From Klebsormidium nitens (taxonomy: Eukaryota; Plantae; Klebsormidiophyceae): DNA of 64,000 nucleotides. Position numbers and translations under genes: made by a program. Location: NCBI GenBank assembly GCA_000708835.1, contig DF236950.1:7508-71507 (forward strand), read 5' to 3'. Position 1 is the stretch's first letter. Each line of letters opens with the position of its first letter. The notes beneath the pieces are model-generated. The model worked only from the letters and a program-made list of their open reading frames with translations. It was not told the DNA's origin and did no database searches. Shown one piece after another: positions 12,737 through 29,396 of the stretch.

Positions 12737-12745
12737 TTGTTCAAC
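12737..12745 (+). repeat. Left 9-bp target site duplication TTGTTCAAC
   Basis: Identical to 29388-29396 and immediately abuts the terminal GAG of the element. Confidence 0.9.
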
Positions 12746-12790
12746 GAGCTATTTCTTAGGATGAGCCTTAGGCCATGAGCGTTTGAGCGC
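12746..12790 (+). repeat. Left terminal inverted repeat (45 bp, degenerate)
   Basis: The inner 30 bp ATGAGCCTTAGGCCATGAGCGTTTGAGCGC match the reverse complement of the right end at 26/30, and the terminal GAG is conserved. Further TGAGCG hexamers and a TCAGATTTGAGC/GCTCAAATCTGA inverted pair lie at 12796-12847. Confidence 0.8.
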
Positions 12791-13409
12791 CCCGCTTCAG
12801 ATTTGAGCGTTACCGCAGAAAATTTGAGCGTTACCGGCTCAAATCTGACGTCATAGCGCTCAAAGTAGTCGTATGCCCGCTTTTTAGGGGCGCGCGCACT
12901 ATTCGCGGTCGCCTTGCTGACGTCAGCAGAAGGGCTTGTAAAATTTACGGGAAATTGGCCATACTTCGAAGATCTGGACCTTTTGTACTAGCTGAGGGCG
13001 GGAGCACGCACAGCTAGGTTAGCTTTCCGCACATTATTACCGACGGGCTCGCTCTATGCATGACTGCTGCGGTTTTTTTCGGTTAAACCCGGGGTTATAC
13101 ACGGGTGGTAGTTCAGTCAACATAATAGTCAACATAATTGTAGGCAGTTGTGCAAGAAATATTCAGCATACCAGAGCCTCCTCCTATTAGCATGACATGC
13201 CGTCCATTCTGCACTTCATGATTCAGGGATTGCATATACGTTCATTTATCATGGACACTAATCACAAACTATTGTCTTTCGACTTGAGTCGACAATACAT
13301 ATTTTGACAATGCAATTCAACCAATTTATACTTTTCTTCATACAAAAAACGCACTGTCTGCGAAGTTCTTTAGCTGCCTTCAATCCTACATGTTACGGAC
13401 CTTCCGGCA

Positions 13410-14105
13410 TTAACACATCGTAATGACACTCCGAACGTGGTACCAGACCGCCTCGTTTTCTCTCAACTGTACAAACTCCATCTGGGGTTGGTAGATCCTC
13501 ATCTTCCTCCTATTTTCCCCCTTTGCCACCGTTACCTTGTGGCCCATCGCCCATACGACCCTTTGCTCGAAGTCCCCTCCCCAGCATCCGCTTCGCGACA
13601 TTCTGTCTACGTAAGTATCGAATTCAGTCAAATCGTCCTCGTCCCGTAGCGCTTGGTACAATTTTTCCCACGTTGGCAATGGTCGCCGTTTGCTCGGGGG
13701 CCTCGAGGACGTTATCAACTGGGGGGGGATAGGCCTATTCTTGTGGTCACGCAGGTAGGCAACTATCGTTGCGCGCACCTTCAACCCCTCTTTCTCTAAG
13801 TCGATTGGGAGACGACCAGCCCGCAGCTGTGCAGCAAGCTCCTCTCCCCCTCCTAGGGGCTCTCCGTTCAATGTTGCCACCACAAATGCAGTCATGAAGA
13901 AGCAGTTCATGTTATCACCGCTTATTGCGAACCGCTTGTAATTGCGCAAGTCCACCGTCCCCTCCGAACTTCGCACGACGATATCATCGCTATCTTCGCT
14001 GTCCGATGACTCGGACAGAGTCACAGGCGGCTCAGCTATTGATCTTGCCGGTGAGGACATGATGGAACCCGAGACTGCAACCGATGCGATGACCTTCGTT
14101 AGCAT
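13410..14105 (-). CDS. OTU-family cysteine protease (deubiquitinase-like) carried by the MULE
   Basis: Cys loop ISGDNMNCFF (cf. GDGNCLF), YVDRMSRSGCWGGDFE (cf. Y..RM...G.WGG..E) and C-terminal WYHVRSV (cf. HY.SV). Could be a separate gene or the terminal exon of the upstream gene. Confidence 0.75.
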   Translation of the reverse strand: MLTKVIASVAVSGSIMSSPARSIAEPPVTLSESSDSEDSDDIVVRSSEGTVDLRNYKRFAISGDNMNCFFMTAFVVATLNGEPLGGGEELAAQLRAGRLPIDLEKEGLKVRATIVAYLRDHKNRPIPPQLITSSRPPSKRRPLPTWEKLYQALRDEDDLTEFDTYVDRMSRSGCWGGDFEQRVVWAMGHKVTVAKGENRRKMRIYQPQMEFVQLRENEAVWYHVRSVITMC

Positions 14106-14446
14106 GTGACGGCTCGTCTCGAAATCACGATTTGACTATTAGCAAATATCACGGTCACTTCATGCCGCGGTCTTGCATTGAGTAGTCCGAGAGGTTGACT
14201 GCCCGGTCGGTATGAGATCACAAACTTGAAGCAAACAGATCCATTCCAGAATAGTTCGTCGGTTGGTGGGATGTTTTTTTTATTTACAGTCGTATTCCTA
14301 GTTTGGCGTTTTTTTTTCCTCGGATTGTTGACTGCAAATGGTTATCTACGAAGCTTTCCTATTTTTCAGCTCACACTTCCTAACTGTTTACTAGTGACAT
14401 TGTTCCTATCACACTGCGAGATTCCTAATCCTCAAGTGCTGCATCT

Positions 14447-17400
14447 TCAATCCTCTGGCTCCTCTATCAGGTAATCGACAAACTTCAAGGCCTCGGCATG
14501 GCTAGGGGCTGGTGACTCCTCACGTGGCGCTCTCTGGCTGCTCTCGGTCGCCTCATCGCTGACGGCCGACTGCCCACCTTCACCCCCTTCGGCCGGCCCT
14601 TCTCCGCCCTTCTCCCCCCCCTTATTCCGCTTCTTCCGTTCTTTCTTTTCTCCCCCCCCTTCCCCCTCGGACTTTCTCTTCCTCCCCTTGGTCTTCGTGT
14701 CCTCAGCAGGGCCCTCTCCACCGCCCTCCGCCGTTCCCTCCGCCGTTCCCCCCTTCTCTTTCCTCTTCCGCTGTTTCTTCTCTTTGGGCTCGCTCCCTTC
14801 TGCCTTCTCTCCCTCTTTTTCCGCCGCAACAGGACCCTTCCTCTTCGCGGGCTCCTTCTTAGCGGCTGCCGCCGCACCGCTCGCTGCGTCTTTCTTTCCA
14901 GAGCCTGACGCGGCGCCTGCTGCCCCCTTCTTTCCCCCGGCGACTTTCCCCGACTTGCCCCCCTTCCCAGCCGCACTGGGACCCGTCTTCTTCTCCGTCA
15001 CTTGCTTTTCCCCCGTCGAAGCTACCTTTTCCTTCCCCTTTCGAGATGTCGCCGTCCCGGCTGTCTTCGAGGAGGGTGCTGTGGTAGTCTCTGCGGGGGC
15101 TGCTGGCAGCGGATCGAACTCGTCCGGAAGCTTTTGCCCCGCCCGGTACGCCATCGCCCGCTCGGCGAACGTCATGTCGGTGGGCGTGGATCTGATCCTC
15201 CGCCCCTTCGACCCCATCCACACATGCAGCCTGCGGCTAAGTACCGACACCACCAGCATGTTTCTCCTCAGCAGGGCAGCTGTCGTGTACCCGTTCTCCT
15301 CCCCTAAAACCACAGCTACCGCGCTCCCAGTCGCAGAGGGGACGGCGCCCTGTACATAGCAGATGCACAAGCTCCATCAAAAGTCTGAAACAGAACAAGG
15401 CATCGTAGGCAGGCTGTGACACTAGGGCAGAAACAAGTACTCGATGAATAAGTAGCCGAAGTCAAAGCAGACTAGAAACAGATGTTTATTTCCCACACCG
15501 CAACCATCGCAGGCAGGATGCGACACTTTACCACAGTCGTCAAACAATTTAAGACACTGCTCGTGCATAAGGAACTCATATATCATCGTCATCGAAGTGC
15601 TCCTGCCCCGCTTACAAAACATCACATGCAGGGTGCGACACTATCCAGCGTGAGGAAATACAATCACCTCGAGAATGCTGTTGATGGTCTCCAGGGGCCA
15701 GCTCTCTGGGTCGGCTGTGCACGGACTGGTCTGCAATAGACAAGGAGAGTGGCATCAGTTTCAGAAAACCCTTTACTACAAAAGCATCGCACGCAGCATG
15801 CGACGCTTTTACAACTTCCACCATCGAAGATTTGCAGTGGGCCGAGCTGCTTGTAAGAGGACCTACCGTGAACGTGCCGGCGTGCTTGAACTTCTTGTGG
15901 GTCAGCCCGAACCCGTACTGCTTGGACTGGTCGGGGAGCTCCAGCTCGGACCCGACGGGAGTCAAGTAGACGACCTGGTACATCGTCCCACTGTCTCCCC
16001 ACTTCTCGAACTTCCCGAACCCCTTCTGAGAGTAAATAGACATTCGTTAGGACTTAAGTGAGTTCAAGCTATCTTGATGAGGGCGGGACCTGTTATGGAG
16101 CTTCTTGCACAGTGTACATGACAAACAAGCAAGACAAAACACATGGCGAGCCCCAGCTTTTATACCTAGAGGGGAAAGCTACAAAGTACAGCAGCTGATC
16201 AAACTCTCCATAGTCAAAAGCAATCATAGTGAAGACGGAAAACAAACAAGACGACACACGGCAAGCCCAACACTTTTTAAACTACAGAGGAAAGCTACAA
16301 AACACAGCAGCTCGTAGAGGTCAGAGCAGTCTCTAAAGTTGGTAAAAAAGTTGCGCTTAACCTACCTCCAGTTTCTTGGGGACCAGGCAGATGACCCTGC
16401 GGGCGACTATCTGTAGACCGGGCGCAATCCAGTCGAGCGGGGTGTCGCCCGGAAGAACCGCGATCCCCACTGTTCCGTCAAACCTGAGAAGGTCTGACAT
16501 CAGCTGTGTCGCCGCCCTGACTGACGACTCGAGCGCGCGCGCGTCTCCGACCACCTCCCTAGCGCACGCAGCTAGATACATAACTAGATGGACCGGTCGC
16601 TCCGTCAAGTCGAATTCCTGGCTGCTGGAGGTCACCCAACCCAGGCGGTCTGTGATGGCGGAAATGGGGGGGAACTTCTCCCCAACTACCCCCTGATGCG
16701 CTGTGTCCGTTCGGACCGCCATGACAGCCAGGCGGGAGTCCGGGCGGATTTGGAGGACGATTTTGCGGTCCCATAGTTCCAGGGAGCGGGGGGGGTTTAC
16801 AATCGACTCCACGACCGAGGCTGACAGATAGGGGGCGGCCGGGAGCTTCTCCTTCTTGGCCAGGGTCCGCGGTTCAGCCCCCCTGTCCCAAACCCGGATC
16901 GTGGGGGTGGCTTCGTCACAGTCCACCTCCCACCGGCACCCCATTACCGCTTCCCTGAAGGGCGTTGTGTCCAGGTAGTCCAGCTCTTAAGGTCCCACTG
17001 CGAGTACATGACTTGCTCGTCGGCCACGTAGTCACGGTCTTCGTTTTTGAACATTGTGCCGGCGGGTTTCACGAAACCAGCGCGCGTGATGAGCGCGTGC
17101 CGCAGCTCCGGAACTGGGATGACGACGAATTGTTGGATGACGAGTTTGGGGAGGTTCTGCAGCGCCACGAGAGTCTGCAGCTGGTCGGGGGTGACCTCGA
17201 AGGTGCGCGACGGGAGGACGGTCCTGAAGTAGCTGCATAGAAGGAAACTTGAGTGGTAAGGAAGGGTGTTGCATGCAGGGTGTGATACTTTAGTTCTAAT
17301 CATTGCCAAACCCCATAATACGTAAAAGGCGGGACTACTTCGGTTGGTCAAGCCTGAAATTGACGTGTCGCATGCAGGGGGCGACACTGTAACCCACAAT

Positions 17401-20400
17401 GCTTTTTATTCATAAAAGGAACGACTGAAAATATTTTATTGATCAAAAAAGAAAACACTTTGACACGACACGCTAAGAGCAGACAGCCGGTATCATTCTA
17501 GTACGGAAACCGAGTTGGTACAATTCAAACTGAACGAAACAGTTTTAATGATGTTAGCATCGCAGGCAGGATGCGATACTTCCGGGAAATACGCTCAGAC
17601 AGCAAACAAACACTCTGACAACTTTACACAACCAAATTCTTGAAGTACGATCGCCAGATATTGATTCAACAGCAGCTTCGTACCTGGGTAGATTGCACAA
17701 ATGTACAGAACAGATTTCGAAATCCACTAATTACTAACCTGAGCGTCATTCGGTCTCGCAAGGAGGCGAGCGCTGCAGGCTTGATGTTTCCGCTGAATGC
17801 GGACACGGACGCCGCCCACCAAAACGGCCTCCCCGCCGGCCCGTCCGGGGTCTGCATCCACAGAATGGCCTTGCCGAACTCGTACGGATCGTACGCTCCG
17901 GCGAAGTGGAGGTAGTCCTTAGCCAATGCAGGCGAATCCCCCCTCTTTCTGGTCTTCGGCTTCTCGTAGAACCCGAAGTCCATGAGCTGGGTGACGACAG
18001 CCTCGCACACCGCGAACAGGACCCCCATCCACTTCACCCAGGACTTCAGATTGGATCGGGATCGGTCCAGGCCGGTGATGTGCTTGAAGGACTCTCCGTC
18101 GAGTTCGCAGAGAAGCACGACGACTGCATCCCAGGAGACGGGCAGGTGCTTCATCGACAGAACGTCGAGGACGTCGATGTCTGGCACAACGAGCTCAGGC
18201 TGCTCGAGCATGACCCATCTTTGCCAAATGGGCTCCCAAAAGCCGCGCTTCTCCTTTGACAGGTTGGCGCAGTGCACCCTCTTCAGCGCCCACACAGACC
18301 GGGCGGACCCGAGTTCGCCGACTTTCTCCGCAGGGAGGCTCAAGGTCGACTTGTCCATGAGCAGCAGGCTGTAAAGCATCAAGAAATAGTAAGCCGTCTT
18401 TTCAATCGCGTCTAAACGTCAGATTTGACATAACATTCTTTCGTACAGAAGGACAAATCACAACAGTATTTCCATGACACTCAGTACAGCCAACAAGAGT
18501 AGACAATAGCATTATGCTTGCAAACTCATTATTAACCGGGATCCCGAGTTCCAATGATCTCCACGGAAAGTAACAGCAAGAAACACAGAAAACGAGTTGG
18601 GTTCTCACCCGAGGCTGGGCTTCAAGCCCACAGCAAACACAATCCCGGGGTAGTTCACTCCTTGCTCTTTGAGCTCTGCTCGCAGCTTAGTCCACTTCCC
18701 AGTGTGTTCGCCGTACAACGTGAGCATCTGCATCGGTAAATAAGTATCGCACTCAGCATGTGACACCTCCACAGCAATCGAGTACAGGAGAATAAACCTC
18801 GACAAAGAGACAGACCCAGACAAGAGAACAATTCCGCGCATACAGTGTATCCGTCCTACAAGGCTTGTCTCTCTTAACCAAATGGGAACTCGAAGGAAGA
18901 AAACAACAAGGCGTCACAGCCTGCCGGCGACACTCCAGGAGATAGGGGATCTGCTTTAAGCTGTGCAACAGTCTATAGGCTAGATATCCTTACGTCATTG
19001 AAATTCTAAAGGTTGAAGAAGCACAGCATCACATCCTGCCTGCGACACTCTCTGGTATAAAATTTCGAAAGGTTGAAGAAGCACAGCATCGCATCCTGCC
19101 TGCGACACTCTCCGAGATAGAATTCCAAAGGTTGAAGAAGCACAGCATCGCATCCTGCCTGCGACACTCTCAGTAAACTCACCGCTCCGCTGACGATCTT
19201 CTCCATCTCTTCTTCGGTCTTGTCGTTGAGCTGGTAGCAGGCGTAAACCTCTTGCGCCACAGTCTTCTTGGAGTTGAACTCGATGTTGTTGTCGTTTATC
19301 TGCCGGGACATAGCCGCGACGTCGTCCATGTTGTCAGCGGTTAGGCCGACCAAGAACGTTTGGAAGAAGATGTCCTTGGTAGTCTTTCCCGTGTCAGCCT
19401 TGTCCTTGGCACGACCCCGTTTGTATCCCTCCAGCCTGGAAAGAAATGGAATCAAATCAACAACTAATTTCCTAGCATATTTAGCACAGCGTACAGCCAA
19501 TGACCTTTGGTACAAAGCAACGGAGGCAGCCATGCCGAGTCGCTCATTTTGTTGTCGGAACGTATGGCAAAGACTGATTCGCAACCAACAACATACAGGA
19601 TGGAATACAGGGCTAACATCACCTTGGTTCTGGTTAAGCTTCTTTTCTATATTCTGTGGCAATGAAATCGTTGAATGCAGTCAAGAAACAAAGGCGAGGC
19701 AACTTTAGCATAGCGAGCGCTGACCACTGCAGTATTTCACAAATGTGCTCACCTCGAGTTCCCATCCACAAGGAACAGCCACCTCCCCACCACGTTCGCC
19801 TTAAGCCACTCCCCCTTCGCCTTCACTCCGGCGTCCTCGCTCTTGCACATCTGCCCGACCGTCTTCTCAAACTTCTCTAGATCCGCCCGATCTTCGACAG
19901 ACATCGCCGCCTTGTCTTCTTCGGTGATCAAAACGTCTTTCCCAAACGGTCTGATCACTGCCGTCACGTCCCCCCTCTCCTTGATGTGGCCCTCCACCCA
20001 GATCCTCTCCCCCGTCCTGACCTGCGCAGGCGTGGTCATCCTTTCCGTGATCCGCACCGCCTTGGGCCGTCCGTTGGCGTCTACCTCAGGGTGCACTACA
20101 CCAAACTTCTCTGCGTCGTTCCCGTTTTGCAGCATGCACATCGGGATGTCGAAGTGCAGCTTGCCCCTCCCATCCCAGTCCTTTGGATAGGCGGCGGTTG
20201 CTTCCATCAGAGACGTCATCCGGCGCGCGACCTGATGCACGCTTACCAGGTCGGTGAGCTTGCGGAACTGCAAGGGTTGAGAAACGTAGTTAGGTGAGCG
20301 AATTGAACCAATCAGCACAGTAAATATTTCGGGAGAAGGACTACACCATCACATGCTGGAGGCGATACTCTCAAAAGAGGTCTAGTAAAGGGTAACTCAA

Positions 20401-22074
20401 GGAGGCATGATGAACAAGACACTGCACGTGGACTATCAGCAACCTTATCCACATTCGTTTACACACTCCGCAGCGATTTGAAAGGAATCCTATTCTGTAC
20501 CAGGTGTTTGTTATAAAAATAGCTAGCTCTGAAACGGGCGTGACCAGCTACAGGCCCCTTACAAACGCCAACACGTTATGCCAACAACCTATCCTAGTAT
20601 CACAGCCAGGATGCGACGCTGGGAGAACACAGAATAGCAGAACGACGAATACTTAAGCATTAACTTGCGCACAGTTCATGCTGGCAATAACCCTAAGGAC
20701 ACCCCTTTACAAGATATCACAAAAACACGAGAACATCAGTGGGCAATGGTATCACAGGCAGCATGCCACGCTTCAGACTACAAACAGCCAGTATGCAGAC
20801 TATCTGAAGGTATAAGAAGGACATGACAACCTCAACAATCAAAAGCGTCACAGGCAGCATGCGACGTTCATACAAAGACCATCCCTTTGTACCCCTTTGC
20901 AGTCCCCATCTCAAGTCTCAAATGAAGTAGAGAACCTCAGTTAAGTCCACAGCATCTCATGCAGTTTGCGACGCTTCTAAACTCAAGCAACATAAAAAAT
21001 CTACTAAAATGTTATCTAATCTATCAAACCTACCTCTTCAGCATTCAGGCCCTTTGCCTCTTCACCCCCCTTCCCCTCCTTGAATTCCTGAGCCAGCTTC
21101 CTGATGTACTCCATCCTCTCAGGGTTGATCTTCCCTGACGGTCCGAAGAAATCTCCAGAGCCCACCGCCCCAGTTGGTGCCTCCTTCTCCCCTCCGTCAG
21201 CAGCCTCTGACTTGCCTGCGGCATCCCCCTTCCCTGACGTTCCCGCCTTCTTTGCACCCCCCTTCTCTGGGGGCTTGGCAATAGGAGGTGTCTCCTTGGG
21301 TGGTGCCTTGTCTTGCTCCGCACCCCCCCCCACCTCTTCCCTCATCTCTGCTGAAACTTCCCCACTTTTCCGCTCTTGCGCTGCGCTAACCTCGCTTCTC
21401 TTCTTCTCGATATCAACTGCGGAGGACTCCACCCCTTCAAGGCTTGACCTTCCTTGCAGCCCCTCCACCTGAACCTCAGGCGGTTCCTTAGTTACCCCTT
21501 CTCCGGTTCCCTCCGCCTCCGCCTTGTCTTCCTTCTTCCCTAACTCAGGATCGTGCGCCTTTTGGGTCGCGCCCGTTACCGCATCTAAGGCCGACAGCTC
21601 ACTGACCGCGGGCGGGTTTTTAGTCGGGGGGTTTTCAGGGTTTACCCCCGAAACGTCAGCGGCCGCCCCGCCCCCCACTTCCGTCGGCGCGCTCGCGACT
21701 TCGAGCCGCGCGCCCGCTCCACTATCCAAAACCTCCAGGCCAACCGGCTGATCTTCGGCGGCGATTCCGGCGGCCGCGCGGTCACCGGAACCGCCTTCTG
21801 CGGCGGCCGCCTCCGCTCGCTGCTCGCCTACCCCACCCTCGAAATTTGACTCCGCTTCTGCCACCACCGAGGGCATTGCAGCAGGGTTAACTTCCGAGAC
21901 TCCTTTCCCGCCTTCCGCATGAGCGGATTCCGCTTCTTCGTTGCCCCTATCCCCCCGCTTCAGCTTGGACCTGGGCTTCCTCGTTCCTAGCGGCAAGTCC
22001 TCAGGGTCAACCTGTGCAGCTTCCCGCTTTGGCTTCTTTCCACGCCCCATACTCGTTTCGCTTCGGTTGTTCAC
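14447..22074 (-). CDS. Large multi-exon MULE cargo protein: low-complexity N-terminus, ParB/Srx-like domain, possible degenerate DNA-MTase fold, Lys/Gly/Glu-rich C-terminal tail
   Basis: Exons bounded by AG/GT at about 22074-21034, 20267-19753, 19435-19181, 18730-18608, 18364-17738, 17233-16366, 16028-15866 and 15350-14447. Splicing creates FLVDGNSRLEGYKR...SRQINDNNIEFNSKKTVAQEVYACYQL. One apparent 1-nt frameshift at ~16986. Confidence 0.75.
19006..19172 (+). repeat. ~60-bp tandem repeat x3, each unit containing one 25-bp palindrome
   Basis: AAAGGTTGAAGAAGCACAGCATC(A/G)CATCCTGCCTGCGACACTCTC occurs three times in an intron. Confidence 0.92.
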
Positions 22075-22908
22075 GACACTATCCGGGATAGAACTTCTTG
22101 GCCCTGGGCCGCTTCGCAGGTTCTTTCCAAACGGTGAAGTACGTGTCGAGACTGTCTCACTCTCTGCTGTGGTATTCTGAGAATCCTGGTCTGTTTTTTT
22201 TTAGCGAGTGATCCTAATTACAAGCCCACTCCGAGAGGCCATACAACCAACAGGCGTCGCAGGCAGCAGGTGACACTAGCTTAGCTAAACCCCAGATGCA
22301 ACGATCGCCTCTGAGCGTCGCACCCCGGATGCGACGTTTTGAGAAACTTTGAGGAGCTCACGAACGACAGCAAGAGAGAAGCGTCCTAGGCAGGATGCGG
22401 CACTAACCTACGAAGCCAGCTGCACAGAGGTTTCAGACAAAGGCGTCACAGGCTGTGTGCGATGCTTTTACCTCTAATGCATTGAAAGCAGTTTGAGCTC
22501 GCATCTAGGCATTCGCTTGCAGCCCACAAGAAAGCATCGTTTTCATAAACGATACTTTGCTGAAACGGCCGTATTCTCCGGCGGCGCCCTGAAAACCAAC
22601 TTCAAAAGTTGGGAAAAAGGACAAATGACGCTTTTCTGAAACCTTTGAAGCATGACGCTAAATGTGACGCTAAAGCGGAGCAACTTTTGCGAGATCAATT
22701 TGTTATCCGTGACTACTTTAGCGTCACACTTTACGGCTGCCTCGCGGCTTATATGATTTTCTTACATTTGTTGTTTCCACCGACAGCCGCAAAATCCAGT
22801 CGGGTGCTTGACTAATGATGTTCAGGATGCGTTTTTTCTAACCATATATTACTACATTATTCTACTGACATGCAAGTTGGCGCATGCACGTGTTTCAAGC
22901 GAACATGA

Positions 22909-22985
22909 CCAATCAGAATGGTGCAAAAGGATGGGCACATCCTTACCAGCCAATCGGAGCATCTAAGGATGTTCGCGCGTCCAAT
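22909..22985 (+). promoter_or_regulatory. Three CCAATC boxes in the divergent promoter region between the cargo gene and the transposase
   Basis: CCAATC at 22909, 22950 and 22981, between the two divergently oriented genes. Confidence 0.5.
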
Positions 22986-23996
22986 CACATTCGAGCAACC
23001 ACGCAGGGGTGCTCGTGCTTGCTGCTGCGATCATAGAATTCCGCGAATGTCACAAACCCTCGGCGCCCATCTCGCTCATTCGTAGGTTTGTAGGTTCGAC
23101 GATCGGGGCGCTTCTCGGCAGTTTCCGCACGTGTGCTGACGTCAGCACGCAATGGCATCAGGTAAGTTGCAGCATCGCATGTCGCCTACGATACTGTGCT
23201 CTGAGAGCTACTGTTAACTGTGACCACCTGCGAAGTTGCTGTCAGACAGCTTGGATCGGATCTTTTGACGAAGCATCGCATGCAACATGCGATGCTACGA
23301 GATAGACGGTGCTACAAACTACAGATTCATATGGTAAAGCTGAGCCCCGTACAGTAAGTCACGTACCAGTAGTTACTGAACTATTCTTTGCCCGAACTGT
23401 GTGCAGCTCTCACCGCGTTCAAGCCGCCACGGCAAGGACTGACAGTTGGTAGTCGGCTTTCCGGGGACGGGAAGCAGGCAACTCAGCGGGCCGATCACGG
23501 CCAGCGTTCAGGTGAATGAACACATTAACAGCTACTTTGAATCTAAAATTTATTGTTTATTGTTCAGGGGGTATTTGTTTTCGTTTCAATTTGTTGTCAC
23601 GATTTGGGGTAGCAAAAGTGCACTTCTTGCTTTCGTTTTAAAGGGCTCCGTATTGCTCATTGTCATCTTGAATCTTTTGACTCCTTTGATTGTTTCGTAA
23701 AAGGTCCTTGACTATAATGAACATTTCGACTTCTTCCGTTATTGATTTAAGGGTTAAAATAGAGAAGTGTTTTGAAGTTAGATTCTAATTTTGGTTGGTT
23801 GATTCAAACGAGAAATCTCACTATACCAAGCTTTGTAGTTCGAAGAATTAAAAGGATGTTGGGCTTGATACTATTTCTTAGTTTATCAATATTAAATTGT
23901 TTGAACTAGCAAGCACGAGGATTCAGCCAGGAATACAGAGACATTTACCGTTTTACCTTGTCCGTAGCAATTATGTTAAGCTAATTTTGGTGCTGT

Positions 23997-26900
23997 GCCA
24001 AGCAGGATCCGAAGGAAATGGCGGGGCACGTACCGGTGGTGCCTCGCCATCGAGGACGCATTCGGACTCCGAGTTGCCCCGCAATCCAACGGCGCAATCC
24101 AAGGAGATGCCAATGGTGGAGATCACCAGCGATAACGGCAAGGTGTACTCCACCATTTGCGACGGCGATGAGGCGATCGTCTTCGAGCGGACGCTAAAAT
24201 CCAAGTTTCACGACGNNNNNNNNNNNNNNNNNNNNNNNNNNNNNNNNNNNNNNNNNNNNNNNNNNNNNNNNNNNNNNNNNNNNNNNNNNNNNNNNNNNNN
24301 NNNNNNNNNNNNNNNNNNNNNNNNNNNNNNNNNNNNNNNNNNNNNNNNNNNNNNNNNNNNNNNNNNNNNNNNNNNNNNNNNNNNNNNNNNNNNNNNNNNN
24401 NNNNNNNNNNNNNNNNNNNNNNNNNNNNNNNNNNNNNNNNNNNNNNNNNNNNNNNNNNNNNNNNNNNNNNNNNNNNNNNNNNNNNNNNNNNNNNNNNNNN
24501 NNNNNNNNNNNNNNNNNNNNNNNNNNNNNNNNNNNNNNNNNNNNNNNNNNNNNNNNNNNNNNNNNNNNNNNNNNNNNNNNNNNNNNNNNNNNNNNNNNNN
24601 NNNNNNNNNNNNNNNCAGCCATTCCCGGTTTGGCTGTACAACCATTTGTTGAAAACTTTCTCTCGGACATTGACACGTCACAGGAAATCTGAAAAACATT
24701 GTCGTCGACTACAGTTGTTTGTGATGATTGGATGAACACATTGAGATACCCAAAGTGATTGCATGCTTTTATTCTAGACTTGGGTATCATCGTAAAATTT
24801 ATTTGTTTACGGGTCCGATTGTTGGACGTTTGTTTTGATCCATCAAAAACACAACTCGTACATTAACCAGGCATATTTGTTTTTTTATACAGTCTAGTAA
24901 AAAGCGTGCAGCCGCTCGCTCGGATGGACAAAATAAGGAGGACTATGGCGAAGGGCCGGGTTCTAGCCGGGGCAAACACGAGGAGCAAGTACGCGGGTCT
25001 AGATATTGCAAAGAAGTTGGGGTTTCCCTTCGTACACAAGCTTTTCCTCGCGGAACAGCAGTTGCAGCCGACGTCGGAGGTCCCGATGGTGTTCATGATG
25101 ACCGTACAAGGCCGGGGGTCAGGCCTGCACGTCGCTAGAGAGATGAGCGTTCCGGGGAGCGACTTGTACTTTAGCACAGCTTATATAGACGCCCAAAAGG
25201 TCACCGCGGAAGACGAGGTGTTGACGCGGATAAGCACGTACTCCCACGTTCAGAGGAGGATGCTAACGATCGCTTCGGCGCTGATAGAGTCGGAGAGCAA
25301 GAAGAACATGGTTGCGTTCATGAAGGAGCTGAAAAAGATCTGCCTAACCGGCTGGCCTGCGGGAGGGCAAGATGGGGAGGGTTTCTGGGAGGCAATCGCG
25401 CCATTCGCGCTGGATTTTTGGAGGTTGTGCTCCGACGCTGCGGAGGGGCCTGCGGCAGCGTACAGGGCGGTGGTCTCTAGCGGGGAGGGTCGGGGGGCGC
25501 TCGTCCAATGCGAGATGCACTTTAAAAAGGACCTGAGGAATGCGGAGCACAACCTGCCGGAGGACTTGCGAGGTCACCACAGGTCCTTGGTGAGGATGTG
25601 GTTGGTGTCCGAGACGGACGAGCAGTGGAAGTCGAGGTTCCACGCTCTGCTGGACTGGTACGAAGCAAAGTTACAGAACAACAAAACGGCGAAAAGAAAA
25701 ATGTGCAACTGGGCGGCGTTCTGGAGATTCAAGTAAGAACGATTTAGACAGCGGCTTATTCCCATAGTATACTAAACGATCTGTGTTTGTTGTCAAGCAG
25801 TCATCGGGCTATTGTGTCAGACGAACGTTTGTTTATAGAGATGTTTCTGTGCTCTTGAAAGGTAGACAGAATGTTGTATGACCTGACTTGCAGGATCCGA
25901 CTGTTTGAATGAGCAAAAATACCCAAGAAAATTGTGCGTTTTTGATACGCTGAGGTTTTCAAGAGTCTCTGTCCAACACTGAATATTATGACTCCGAGCT
26001 GGCAGGATGCAAGGAGCGTCGCATGTTGAGTGCGATGCTTGTGATATGTTTGTCGTGTTGGGCGCTGACTTTGGTATTATTTTCGTAACTCAAACCTTCA
26101 GGTCCAAGGAGCTGAAGGCGTGGTCGATGCCTGAGAACGTGAAATTTTTGGAGGAGGAGTGGGTAGCAGTGAATCCGTCCGCTAATTTGGCCGAGATCGT
26201 GAACGCTATTTTCTGGTTCTTGGTGGGAGGGAAAGGGCCGTATCTACCAAGGGGGGAGGTGATTCTGAACGAGGGAACGGGCGGCGTGTTGCAAATCGCG
26301 CGAACAGTGGAATTTGAGGAGACGGGCTACACGGGGCAGGGCCCGACGCTAGAGGAATTGCGAGCGAGGGGTGAGGAGAGGAAAAAAAGCGTGGAAACGC
26401 AACGGGAGAACGCACGGCGGATGTCTGGAGCGGCCCTAGGAGATGTCGCGAGAGGGGCGGGTCTTGCGACCGGGACGGTTGGGGGTGGGGTGAGGAACGT
26501 GGTCTCAAAAACGGCGTGGGCGGCATCAAGTCCAGGATCCGCGGGGGTGGAAAGCACGCACAGACATGACCGGGTCTTAAAGGAAGTGGATAACAGAACG
26601 AGGGAGAAGGGAAAGGGGAAGCAATCTGGAGCAGAGGAGGGTGGAGAGGACGGAGGGGTCAAGGGCAGCAGGTATTACGAGGAGCTGGCGATTGGAATTT
26701 CGGAGGGGAAAAAACAGCTGGAGGATCTACCGCTGGAGGAGAAAGAGCGTGTAGTTGAACTGCAGAGGATGGCTGCTGCTGGAGCAGCCAAGGGGGCGGC
26801 GGGCGCGAGACCGCAACCAGCCGACACACCGGGCCCAAGTAATGCGAATACGCAGCAGACTGGGGAGCAGGCAAAAGAAGCAGCAGGCCCGAGTGCTCCT

Positions 26901-28534
26901 AGGAGGGAAGAAGAGCCACGAGTAGCGGAGGCAGCGGGGCCTAGACAAGGTGAATGGGAGGACGAGGACGAGGTGATGGGAGAGGGTGGAGAAAGAAGTA
27001 CTGAGGCGATAGGGGCGGCTGATGAGGCAGAAGAAGAGCTAATCCGGAGGAGAGCAGTAAAACGGCTGCAAGAGAAGAATTTGGGGAGAAAGGCGTCCTG
27101 GTCAGATGAGTTTGGAGCTGAGGGCTCGGAACGGGGGGGTGCGAAAGAAGGGGGTACGAAGACGGGGTCAGAGAGCGTGGCACTGCCTGGGGACGAGAAA
27201 TACGAGGAAGGAGAATGGGGGGTTTGTCGATTGAAGAAAGGTGATGGCTCAGGGTGCGTCGGGGTAAAAATCGGCGGGGGAAGATGCGAGACAACGAGCT
27301 TTGAAGCCCAGAGGTATCACGGAGCATCGGGGGTGTTGGTGTTGATGCGGTGAGTGCGTCGACTCAAGCTGTAGTACTGAGTTTCGGAAAGTCCTGCAGC
27401 GTACGTGGTACTCGACCGGTTGATTTGATCATATCGCTGTCATAGGGTCAGGATTAAAACATGTACTAGTCTCGAGCTTTCATTATTACTTGCAATTCGG
27501 TGTACTTGAATCTATCAGTGCCGAATCCTTGGCCACATGATTCTCGATAGCATCACATGCAGGATGCGATGCTTAAACGTATCAACTATTTTGTGCACAG
27601 CCAAGCGTTCCGCCACTTCGGCCTACAAAACAGGCAGGGAGAGTACGAGAACACGGGCATGAAATACATGTCTTACGCGAAGATGTGCATTGACGGCCCG
27701 TGCGACAGTCGCCAAGGAACCAACAAAAGTCTCGTGGACAAGACGACGCCGGAAAAGGGGAACGAGGTGGGGATTTTCGAGGGGACTCTCCTGAGTGACT
27801 CGGAGCTCGCATGGCTGCGACAAGCGGGGTGGAAAGTAAACCCGTTCTACATCATCAGCCTACAAAAGGTCCACTCGGAGCAAGTGACGTATAAGGGGCA
27901 GGTCAAGCAACGGGGAAAACCGCCCCGGAACGACGGGTTGAGCGACGTCGAGAACGAGTCGGAACGGCAGCGGCGGCAACGGGAGGAGGCTGCTGCGCGA
28001 CGAGCGGAGAGGGAATTGGAGAGAGAGAAGAAGGAGGTGGAGAAGGAGATGGGCAAACGGCCGAGCGAGCGTCCAGAGGGAAGGAAGGTGAAGAAAGTGG
28101 GAAGGGTGATCAGAGATATGGAAACGCGGCTGGAGCAGGCGCTGGAGATGGAAAGTACTGTGCACGTGGAGAAGTACGTGCAAAGGGAGTCGATTGAAGT
28201 TCTGGTCGAAGAAGCCTCAGCGCTGTTTTCGACGAGAATAGGAGGGAGGTACAGGGTTACGATAGACGCCGCCCCGAGGTGTGACGAGATTTGTCCGGAG
28301 TACGTGGAGATGAAGGAAAAGAAGTCGGGGAGCTGGGTCCACTGCAGACACGTGTACGCGGTGCTGCGGGTGGGACTGAGGCTGTTCGACTTCACTGACG
28401 GAGACGACACAGGGGTGCCGTTGATCCACCAGGCTACGTTTTCGGAAAAGGAGCTTAGATCGATTCTGTCACAGGGCCTAGACGTCAAAGCGATGGGGGG
28501 AGAATTAATGGAATACGCAACAGAAGAAGAGTAG
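23997..28534 (+). CDS. Mutator-family DDE transposase with C-terminal SWIM zinc finger (multi-exon; 5' part spans an assembly gap)
   Basis: Exon ~24910-25733: FSTAYIDAQK (D1), IASALIESESKKNMVAFMKELKK, FALDFW (D2) and QCEMHFKKDLR (CxxH). Exon ~26101-27350: NPSANLAEIVNAIF (catalytic E). Exon ~27601-28534: RCDEICPEY...VHCRHVYAV (SWIM). Start codon not resolved. Confidence 0.88.
24216..24615. other. Assembly gap (400 N)
   Basis: Run of N. Confidence 1.
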
Positions 28535-29192
28535 TGCTAATGATGCTACGACCGCAGCTGGTCCTAATACCAGCATTTGTTTTTGGCAGTCTGTACATAA
28601 ACTGAACGGTGTATATGCATGAACTAGTGATGTGCCACTTGCTTGTAAGCAGTTGAATTGAAGGGAAGTTTGAATGTTTTCGATAACGCTCACTGATATC
28701 AAATGATACATGTATGTGTATGTGTGTTGCTTGTCAGCCTTAGGTATGTCAGTAAACCCAATGGAACACGCAAATGGATGAACGGACTAAGAGTCTGTAG
28801 AATGTCAGAAGTTGGTTGTCCTGCCAGTTGTCCTAAAAAGGCTCGCGCGCAGGCGACAAACTTAGCTGCCACCCGGCCGCCGCGACCGACCTTAAGGTGG
28901 AGGTACTGCGCTCATATGCAATATAAGTGTGGGTGAAAGTAACAGTAGTAACCAATGTACACATTAGCTATCTTTTAATCACCAGGGATACTTTATAAGG
29001 TTTTTTTCGCGGCGGTTACGGGAAAATGCAGTCACCCATTACAGGCGCTAAAATATACGGAAGAATTTACCGTATGGTCATAAGCATCGCATGGTGGATG
29101 CGATGCTTGAACAGCAATGCTAAACAAAAAGTCCGACACCATATGTCAACGAATCAATGATGCAACCACGGACGTAAGTACAATCTAAAGGT

Positions 29193-29212
29193 CCTAACCC
29201 TAAAACCCTAAA
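29193..29212 (+). repeat. Short telomere-like/telo-box tract CCTAACCCTAAAACCCTAAA
   Basis: Seen directly, ~175 bp inside the right end of the MULE. Confidence 0.5.
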
Positions 29213-29342
29213 TACATATTATGGACTTCAGCCGTATTCACCCGGCGATACATTTCGAATTTTCAGAAAGCTGCTGACGTCACTTTCGCGGCGACCACTG
29301 TCCGCTCGCGCCGGCCACACGTACGCTCACGGGCCCACGGTC

Positions 29343-29387
29343 GCGCTCATACGCTCATGACATAAAGCTCATACATAACATAGACTC
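29343..29387 (-). repeat. Right terminal inverted repeat (45 bp, degenerate)
   Basis: GCGCTCATACGCTCATGACATAAAGCTCATACATAACATAGACTC, the reverse-complement match to 12746-12790. Confidence 0.8.
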
Positions 29388-29396
29388 TTGTTCAAC
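29388..29396 (+). repeat. Right 9-bp target site duplication TTGTTCAAC
   Basis: Identical to 12737-12745. Confidence 0.9.

Follow-up and report, generated by a model that had tools for sequence, protein, structure and literature searches.

A palindrome array private to a giant Mutator-like element of Klebsormidium nitens and its possible role in self-recognition

Why does a transposable element carry more than two dozen copies of one palindrome in its own non-coding DNA, when the adjacent host DNA has none? This question is raised by a 64-kb stretch of the genome of the streptophyte alga Klebsormidium nitens (assembly GCA_000708835.1, contig DF236950.1, positions 7,508 to 71,507; all 64,000 nucleotides are here called the window), in which a Mutator-like element of 16,642 bp (12746–29387) carries a plus-strand transposase gene and, divergent from it, a large minus-strand accessory gene, hereafter the cargo gene. 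Twenty-six palindromic sites of 25 bp are dispersed around and within these two genes. We consider them to be recognition sites for an element-encoded, sequence-specific, symmetric dimer with the cargo protein as the likeliest candidate, a reading to which we assign a probability of about 0.6. Judged from sequence comparison with related elements, the reading of the palindromes as self-recognition sites is well supported; that a protein binds the sites, which protein this may be and what its binding would bring about are inferences.

A discrete class of sites in non-coding DNA

The exact pattern AGYRTCRCA-N7-TGCGAYRCT was present at 11 sites of the window, and allowing up to three mismatches gave 52 strand-matches, corresponding to 26 sites that span 15399 to 29107, as compared to a mean of 1.08 strand-matches when shuffled sequence was searched in the same way. 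An earlier reading of the same DNA, the original prediction, had listed 26 sites, and the same 26 were recovered here. A symmetric position weight matrix (PWM) was built from them and scanned over the whole window: the 26 sites scored 22–36 bits, the next best match 15.4 bits (2434–2458, probably a chance match) and all else at most 8 bits. In the remaining 47 kb of the window, which includes spliced host genes and their introns, zero sites were detected. The 26 sites form a discrete class that is private to the insertion at 12746–29387, and the prediction that the motif never occurs outside the element agrees with the PWM scan, in which no intermediate match appeared elsewhere in the 64 kb. 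Their number is a lower bound, since an assembly gap within the element (24216–24615) is not bridged.

The geometry of the sites is strict. The spacer has 7 bases at every site, as predicted, and is itself near-palindromic (K-G-C-W-G-S-A around the central W): of the 26 sites, 23 have C at position 12 and 25 have G at position 14, and the centre is A or T. The whole unit can be written as the near-complete 25-bp palindrome AGCRTCGCA-TGC-W-GCA-TGCGAYGCT; the information content of the motif is about 30 bits, and A-rich and T-rich bases often border the unit. The spacers had also been described as directional, a description that did not hold up: the asymmetric form GGCAGGA/TCCTGCC is merely a common variant of a near-palindromic spacer and was found in both orientations.

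With regard to the flanks of the sites, mutual similarity was no higher than among random non-coding positions of the element, so the predicted lack of relatedness applies to most sites but not to those in a tandem repeat at 19001–19171 (2.9 copies of a 60-bp unit), which holds three of them. Several clusters show a regular spacing of 60–110 bp, a parallel to the VANDAL elements of Arabidopsis. Point mutation cannot account for 26 occurrences of a 25-bp motif, and a copying process must therefore exist: new sites must originate by copying, one recent tandem triplication being visible and older flanks having been randomised. Origin from a miniature inverted-repeat transposable element (MITE), the residue of which had been named as an alternative in the original prediction, was rejected: apart from the one tandem triplet the flanks resemble each other no more than controls do, there are no shared duplications around the units and no copies occur in the host flanks. 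The comparison made there with the core sites of tyrosine recombinases was likewise dropped, as no recombinase was found.

The distribution along the element is uneven. Twenty-three of the sites lie in 15399–23296, within and upstream of the cargo gene, at a density of about 3 per kb, and the other three are found in transposase introns or in the 3' flank. No site occurs in the termini or in the leftmost 2.65 kb. Reading from the left, four sites (starting at 15399, 15503, 15618 and 15783; 15399–15807) are followed by three in one cargo intron (17265, 17364 and 17556; 17265–17580), five in cargo intron 18730–19182 (18743, 18910, 19025, 19085 and 19144; 18743–19168), the last three of which are those of the 60-bp repeat, and five upstream of cargo exon 1 (20345, 20596, 20748, 20844 and 20951; 20345–20975). 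Further upstream lie four sites at a spacing of about 62 bp (22253, 22314, 22380 and 22442; 22253–22466) and two between the divergent genes (23171 and 23272; 23171–23296). On the transposase side, one site is located in an intron (26015–26039), one at the end of an intron (27549–27573) and one in non-coding DNA on the 3' side, 280 bp short of the right element end (29083–29107).

In order to relate the sites to coding DNA, the latter was defined by conservation in a translated comparison with eleven related contigs, which gave blocks amounting to 5.8 kb of the element; exon borders rest on homology and on GT-AG signals. A conserved block is touched by a single site (23171), where 39–46% of the 26 would be expected to do so (P between 5e-5 and 2.5e-6), and in relatives the corresponding figures were 0 of 21, 2 of 13, 0 of 10, 0 of 7 and 2 of 12. 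The prediction that sites never occur in exons accordingly holds almost throughout, with reservations for 23171, which touches a block shared with the related contig L007, and possibly for 27549–27573: by eye, the spacer of the latter (TGCAG|GA) may contain the splice acceptor of the next transposase exon, which would make its right arm part of the coding sequence (D-A-M-L...). Two stretches of the presumed divergent promoter, 22547–22786 and 23073–23178, show 68% and 80% DNA identity to L007, respectively, and may represent unannotated 5' exons or conserved regulatory DNA; it is the second of these that the site at 23171 touches.

Replacement of the palindrome among related elements

The nearest full-length homologue of the transposase (P0005, 34% identical) is encoded in the same K. 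nitens assembly, GCA_000708835.1, on a scaffold of 11.9 kb (L001) that displays the same head-to-head gene pair, including a homologue of cargo exon 1; this arrangement recurs in every relative in which that side of the transposase gene is visible. The palindrome of the window is absent from L001, which instead harbours 21 copies of TCCCGTT-N-AACGGGA compared to 0.6 expected. Other distant relatives have palindromes of their own: 7 copies of AATCGCCGTT-N-AACGGCGATT in L002, 10 copies of TGCGCAGTT-N-AACTGCGCA in L005 and 13 in its 93%-identical sister copy L012, and 2 copies of TCGCAATT-N-AATTGCGA in the 3.6 kb of L003. The palindromes of the distant relatives are built around GTT-N-AAC. In L001, L002, L005 and L012 the transposase is 37–55% and the cargo exon 33–36% identical to that of the window element, and none of them has the window motif.

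Closer relatives present an intermediate state. Cargo exon 1 (19752–20219, minus strand), which is 35% identical to that of L001, shares 64–68% identity with its counterparts in L007/L008, L009 and L010, and in these the outer arms AGYRTCG-N11-CGAYRCT are kept within the same 25-bp span (13 sites in 7.2 kb of L007, 12 in 4.1 kb of L009 and 4 in 1.9 kb of L010, with fewer than 0.3 expected). The inner bases have changed lineage-wide, to CTTC-NNN-GAAG in L007, whereas in L009 and L010 the inner part lacks symmetry. Conservation of the sites between diverged copies, which had been proposed as a check on the original prediction, was found in a stronger form, close relatives retaining arms and span and distant ones having exchanged the palindrome as a whole. 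The privacy of the motif, its fixed geometry, the persistence of the arrangement at about 35% protein identity and the concerted replacement of the palindrome together point to a site that co-evolves with an element-encoded reader. Moreover, two palindrome specificities, that of the window and that of L001, apparently coexist in one genome, which argues against a reader supplied by the host.

Exact-motif scans of metagenome data (at least 120 contigs with a match) and of viral data (14 contigs) returned one exact site per contig and never an array; mostly located in GC-rich DNA of bacterial appearance, the matches seem to be due to chance or to hairpins. Two bacterial-looking metagenome contigs contain clustered hairpin repeats, AGCGTCGCA-N7-TGCGACGCT and AGCGTCGG...CCGACGCT (L063:1914–2177 and L064:1241–1304), which appear to be of the type of repetitive extragenic palindromes (REP) and unrelated to the transposon.

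Candidate readers of the palindromes

The symmetry of the sites fits a protein on duplex DNA rather than a folded strand. The two arms of one site match each other by Watson-Crick pairing at 72% of positions only, and at the variable pairs 3-23, 4-22 and 7-19 they match in 12, 12 and 9 of 24 cases compared to shuffle means of 11.4, 11.3 and 12.3; each half-site fits the consensus, yet the arms vary independently, i.e., without covariation. Selection for a hairpin or cruciform was ruled out by this absence of covariation together with the 72% arm pairing, and the 1-base centre of the distant palindromes leaves no room for a hairpin loop. A structural role of a folded strand is unlikely, and dyad symmetry combined with independent conservation of half-sites points to a dimeric protein on duplex DNA. 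The same data bear on an action at the RNA level, according to which palindromes in one pre-mRNA would pair or fold and thereby aid splicing or feed small-RNA production. Most sites are intronic, any two copies are mutually complementary and the minus (transcript) strand shows a slight excess of G-U pairs (35 vs. 21); furthermore, under the GT-AG reading of the minus-strand intron 18730–19182, one palindrome starts about 15 nt inside the 5' splice site and another ends at a like distance from the 3' splice site, and the two could pair in RNA. On the other hand, the lack of covariation and the incomplete arm pairing apply here as well, sites are also present in the intergenic region and the 3' flank, and the palindromes with a 1-base centre cannot form hairpins. 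In addition, pairing in RNA could do without dyad symmetry and without a sequence common to all introns, and it predicts no concerted, lineage-wide change of inner bases. We regard action through RNA as very improbable, the least likely of the explanations weighed here.

Following this, we propose that an element-encoded dimer would bind the 26 palindromes as cis-acting sites, the candidate being the large minus-strand cargo protein, whose N-terminal part may resemble ParB. With so dense an array in the region of the cargo gene and divergent promoter, this protein would be able to locate its own element and cover it while leaving all other DNA unbound. If VANC, KorB and PAG3 (see below) are taken as analogues, the cover might then control chromatin or transcription of the element through, for instance, anti-silencing or self-modification. 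Site and protein would co-evolve, which would leave each lineage of the family with a private palindrome. That the sites serve self-recognition had been part of the original prediction, and this part is favoured by the comparative evidence, in which arms are first kept and then swapped by lineage; its other part, a ParB-like cargo protein as the binder, is at most suggested by the sequence, as set out below.

The transposase is the other element-encoded candidate, and it might bind the palindromes via an N-terminal zinc-finger region, in which case they would be internal transposition enhancers or sites of its own transcriptional control. Mutator transposases bind DNA in a sequence-specific manner and are able to activate cognate copies and reduce their methylation (bioRxiv 10.64898/2026.08.24.746577); one of them, AtMu1c, has been shown to act as a transcription factor. 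Sites are present in transposase introns (26015 and 27549, and likewise in L002), the transposase co-diverges with the palindromes as the cargo protein does, and its homologue on L001 contains, by eye, a WRKY/GCM1-like C..C...H.H region. However, the element ends carry TGAGCG repeats and no palindrome, so the palindromes are not end-binding sites of the transposase, and the site-free left 2.65 kb does not suit this explanation either. The transposase AtMu1c binds terminal inverted repeats and not internal DNA (bioRxiv 10.64898/2026.08.24.746577), and symmetric sites of 15–25 bp would suit a dimer of the helix-turn-helix type better than a single zinc finger. Binding by the transposase is considered unlikely, and the cargo protein is favoured because the termini differ from the palindromes, because the Mutator transposases studied bind ends and because most of the sites (23 of 26) surround the cargo gene.

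The likeness of the cargo protein to ParB rests on its first two exons. A profile of exon 2 (19183–19437, minus strand) compared to 177,635 PDB sequences ranked H. pylori ParB and P1 ParB first, at E-values below significance (0.058–0.12), and with a larger exon-2 alignment three of the four PDB matches listed were ParBs; the E-values in these searches ranged from 0.058 to 0.46. Exon 1 ends in DGNSR; the motif DGN(S/T)R at this position is invariant among relatives and was read as a GxxR motif. The alignment with H. pylori ParB begins directly after the GERR motif of the latter, in register with DGNSR of the cargo protein. Exon 3 (18607–18729) and further conserved exons (16360–17235 and 17733–18367, together spanning 16360–18367) follow on the minus strand; in profile searches of the PDB with these downstream exons no oxygenase, methylase or DNA-binding domain was detected, although searches exon by exon are insensitive. 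Taken together, these findings are no more than suggestive of a ParB-like cargo protein.

Several results weigh against a ParB-like cargo protein as the reader of the palindromes. The two ParB alignments fall on different parts of the ParB chains, and Pfam, NCBIfam and PADLOC searches of the cargo exons gave no match. An AlphaFold 2 (AF2) model of exon 1, in which the domain is truncated at the GxxR-like motif, found no fold match in the PDB (Foldseek), the AFDB clusters or VIA-align wide. Protein Atlas searches with exons 1 and 2 were uninformative, and a DNA-binding domain was identified in none of the cargo exons by the same insensitive exon-wise searches. The one RNA run compared with the element yielded no contig of it, and its genes may be silent. 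Among the relatives, L004 (34% transposase identity) shows no recurrent palindrome in 7.3 kb, and between the 93%-identical copies L005 and L012 the sites have diverged by 9.0% as compared to 6.4% for other DNA, which provides no positive sign of selection. The non-conservation of sites in this pair is uninformative, as it would be expected of decaying copies.

The L005/L012 comparison would also fit palindromes without any function for the element, be it as a self-propagating REP-like mini-repeat, as a by-product of repair or gene conversion or as sites for a host factor. Such an origin would supply the copying process that is needed in any case and of which the tandem triplication is a trace, and single hairpin-like matches do occur in unrelated bacterial-looking contigs. 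Like REPs and MITEs, the palindromes are short units repeated in non-coding DNA, but those are found genome-wide with shared flanks or target duplications, whereas the Klebsormidium sites lie in one element, have unrelated flanks and are absent from the 47 kb of adjacent host DNA. Furthermore, the architecture persists across lineages whose proteins are 33–37% identical while the sequence of the palindrome changes, and apparently different palindromes in one genome are not explained by a single host factor. We therefore hold a functionless origin to be quite improbable.

Within the proposal of a cargo-encoded reader, a more specific version is conceivable, in which the protein would be a true ParB-type clamp that loads at 26 parS-like palindromes, closes upon CTP binding and spreads over 16.6 kb, shielding the element from silencing or holding excised DNA together; rapid switching of the specificity of palindrome and protein would then create mutually blind "incompatibility groups" among the transposons of one genome. 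We regard this version as doubtful.

To our knowledge, self-recognition by a transposon is known in detail for one eukaryotic case, the VANDAL/VANC system of Arabidopsis. The family described here would, judged from sequence, constitute a second, independent and much more explicit example, and no description of these palindromes in Klebsormidium was found in the literature searched. Systems of this kind have recent precedents, namely VANDAL/VANC and PAG3. VANC motifs, the counterparts of the VANC anti-silencing proteins with which they co-evolve, are dense in introns and upstream regions of VANDAL genes and rare elsewhere, differ between related families and gain copies by tandem duplication; they are non-palindromic 9-bp motifs in one orientation (PMC5735166; Hosaka et al., 2017). 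Both systems combine an element of the Mutator superfamily, accessory genes and a family-specific motif that is dense in its own non-coding DNA, which makes VANDAL/VANC the closest working analogue. By contrast, VANC motifs are short and direct, and the Klebsormidium sites are dyad-symmetric, 15–25 bp long and mostly surrounded by unrelated flanks; a VANC-family protein was not matched by Pfam in any open reading frame (ORF) piece of the element.

In the red alga Bostrychia, giant Plavaka, Mutator and Zisupton transposons have been described in a preprint of 2025 in which PAG3 combines a ParB-like N-terminus with a 2-oxoglutarate (2OG) oxygenase; PAG3 genes adjoin tandem inverted-repeat arrays, and the protein has been proposed to bind and modify its own transposon (bioRxiv 10.1101/2025.02.11.637652). 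By description alone, the likeness is suggestive: a giant algal DNA transposon, an inverted-repeat array beside an accessory gene, as 23 of the 26 sites lie within or upstream of the cargo gene, and a putative ParB-like N-terminus. The systems differ in that the host here is a streptophyte and not a red alga and in that the repeats are dispersed in introns of both genes and not in tandem, and the exon-wise, insensitive profile searches of the cargo exons gave no 2OG-oxygenase signal.

Among bacteria, plasmid RK2 carries 12 OB sites. These operators are read by KorB, an element-encoded dimer of the ParB family that acts over kilobases (PMC11790492). Common to both systems are many copies of one palindrome dispersed in the non-coding DNA of a mobile element, the 26 sites here being likewise dyad-symmetric; the difference is that KorB/ParB is bacterial and that CTP binding, clamp closure and sliding have been demonstrated there, whereas the cargo protein resembles ParB at E-values short of significance. 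The relatives offer a graded series in which first the arms and then the whole palindrome change together with the element proteins, and the putative co-evolution of protein and site would be directly testable by a small matrix of binding assays. The family would also extend the red-algal proposal of ParB-like accessory proteins in giant transposons to a streptophyte alga, and if the link to ParB were true, a recognition module of the bacterial plasmid type would operate on eukaryotic chromatin.

The host element and its copies

The element that hosts the palindromes is a member of the Mutator superfamily, as indicated by its target-site duplication, its terminal inverted repeats and the fold of its transposase, and the original prediction of a giant Mutator element proved correct in these respects. 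It begins with 5'-GAG and ends with CTC-3', flanked by the 9-bp direct repeat TTGTTCAAC on the left (12737–12745) and on the right (29388–29396), a length in the 9–11 bp range of the superfamily; an apparent duplication of 12 bp turned out to be these 9 bp plus a chance CTC. The duplicated sequence contains GTTCAAC, which equals the GTT-N-AAC core of the palindromes of L001, L002 and L005 and may be chance or a hint of targeting. The imperfect inverted repeats, located 15–45 bp from each element end, have cores at 12761–12790 (plus strand) and 29343–29372 (minus strand) that match at 25 of 30 positions. TGAGCG repeats accompany both, continuing on the left to about 12830; four copies lie in 12746–12900, and several subterminal copies are present at both ends.

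The catalytic domain of the transposase, with a Mutator/IS256 fold, is encoded by the plus-strand exon 24906–25736, an ORF with just 27 relatives among 1.84 billion representative proteins. Its AF2 model (mean predicted local distance difference test score, pLDDT, of 79) matched FRS6, FAR1, FHY3, ZSWIM proteins and IS256-family transposases at E-values of 2e-7 to 1e-4, and the structure of the ISCth4 transposase at 1e-5. Further plus-strand exons (26094–28501) include, by eye, a SWIM-like CxC...CxH motif near the C-terminus. The Pfam MULE and SWIM models did not match the ORF pieces of the transposase. Whether applied to the full-length K. nitens homologue of the transposase or to the ORF pieces of the whole element, Pfam, NCBIfam and PADLOC gave no match. 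The gap at 24216–24615 falls into the 5' part of the gene: contigs of two runs enter it from either side by at most 255 letters and none spans it; continuity is therefore only presumed, and the transposase gene is incomplete in its 5' part. The first catalytic D may lie in or near this gap.

In the left part of the element (12746–15398) there are an ORF at 13410–14105 with OTU-protease-like motifs by eye and no Pfam match, and a K/E/G-rich ORF at 14447–15370. A contig of DNA run X6, from a second organism, skips 356 bp (19391–19746), which corresponds roughly to the first cargo intron. Contigs of DNA run X5 over 19000–24990 show C>T (53) and G>A (84) as almost their only differences from the window, the pattern expected of a bisulfite library. 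Many contigs in runs X1, X5 and X6 are 90–99% alike, which indicates a multi-copy family.

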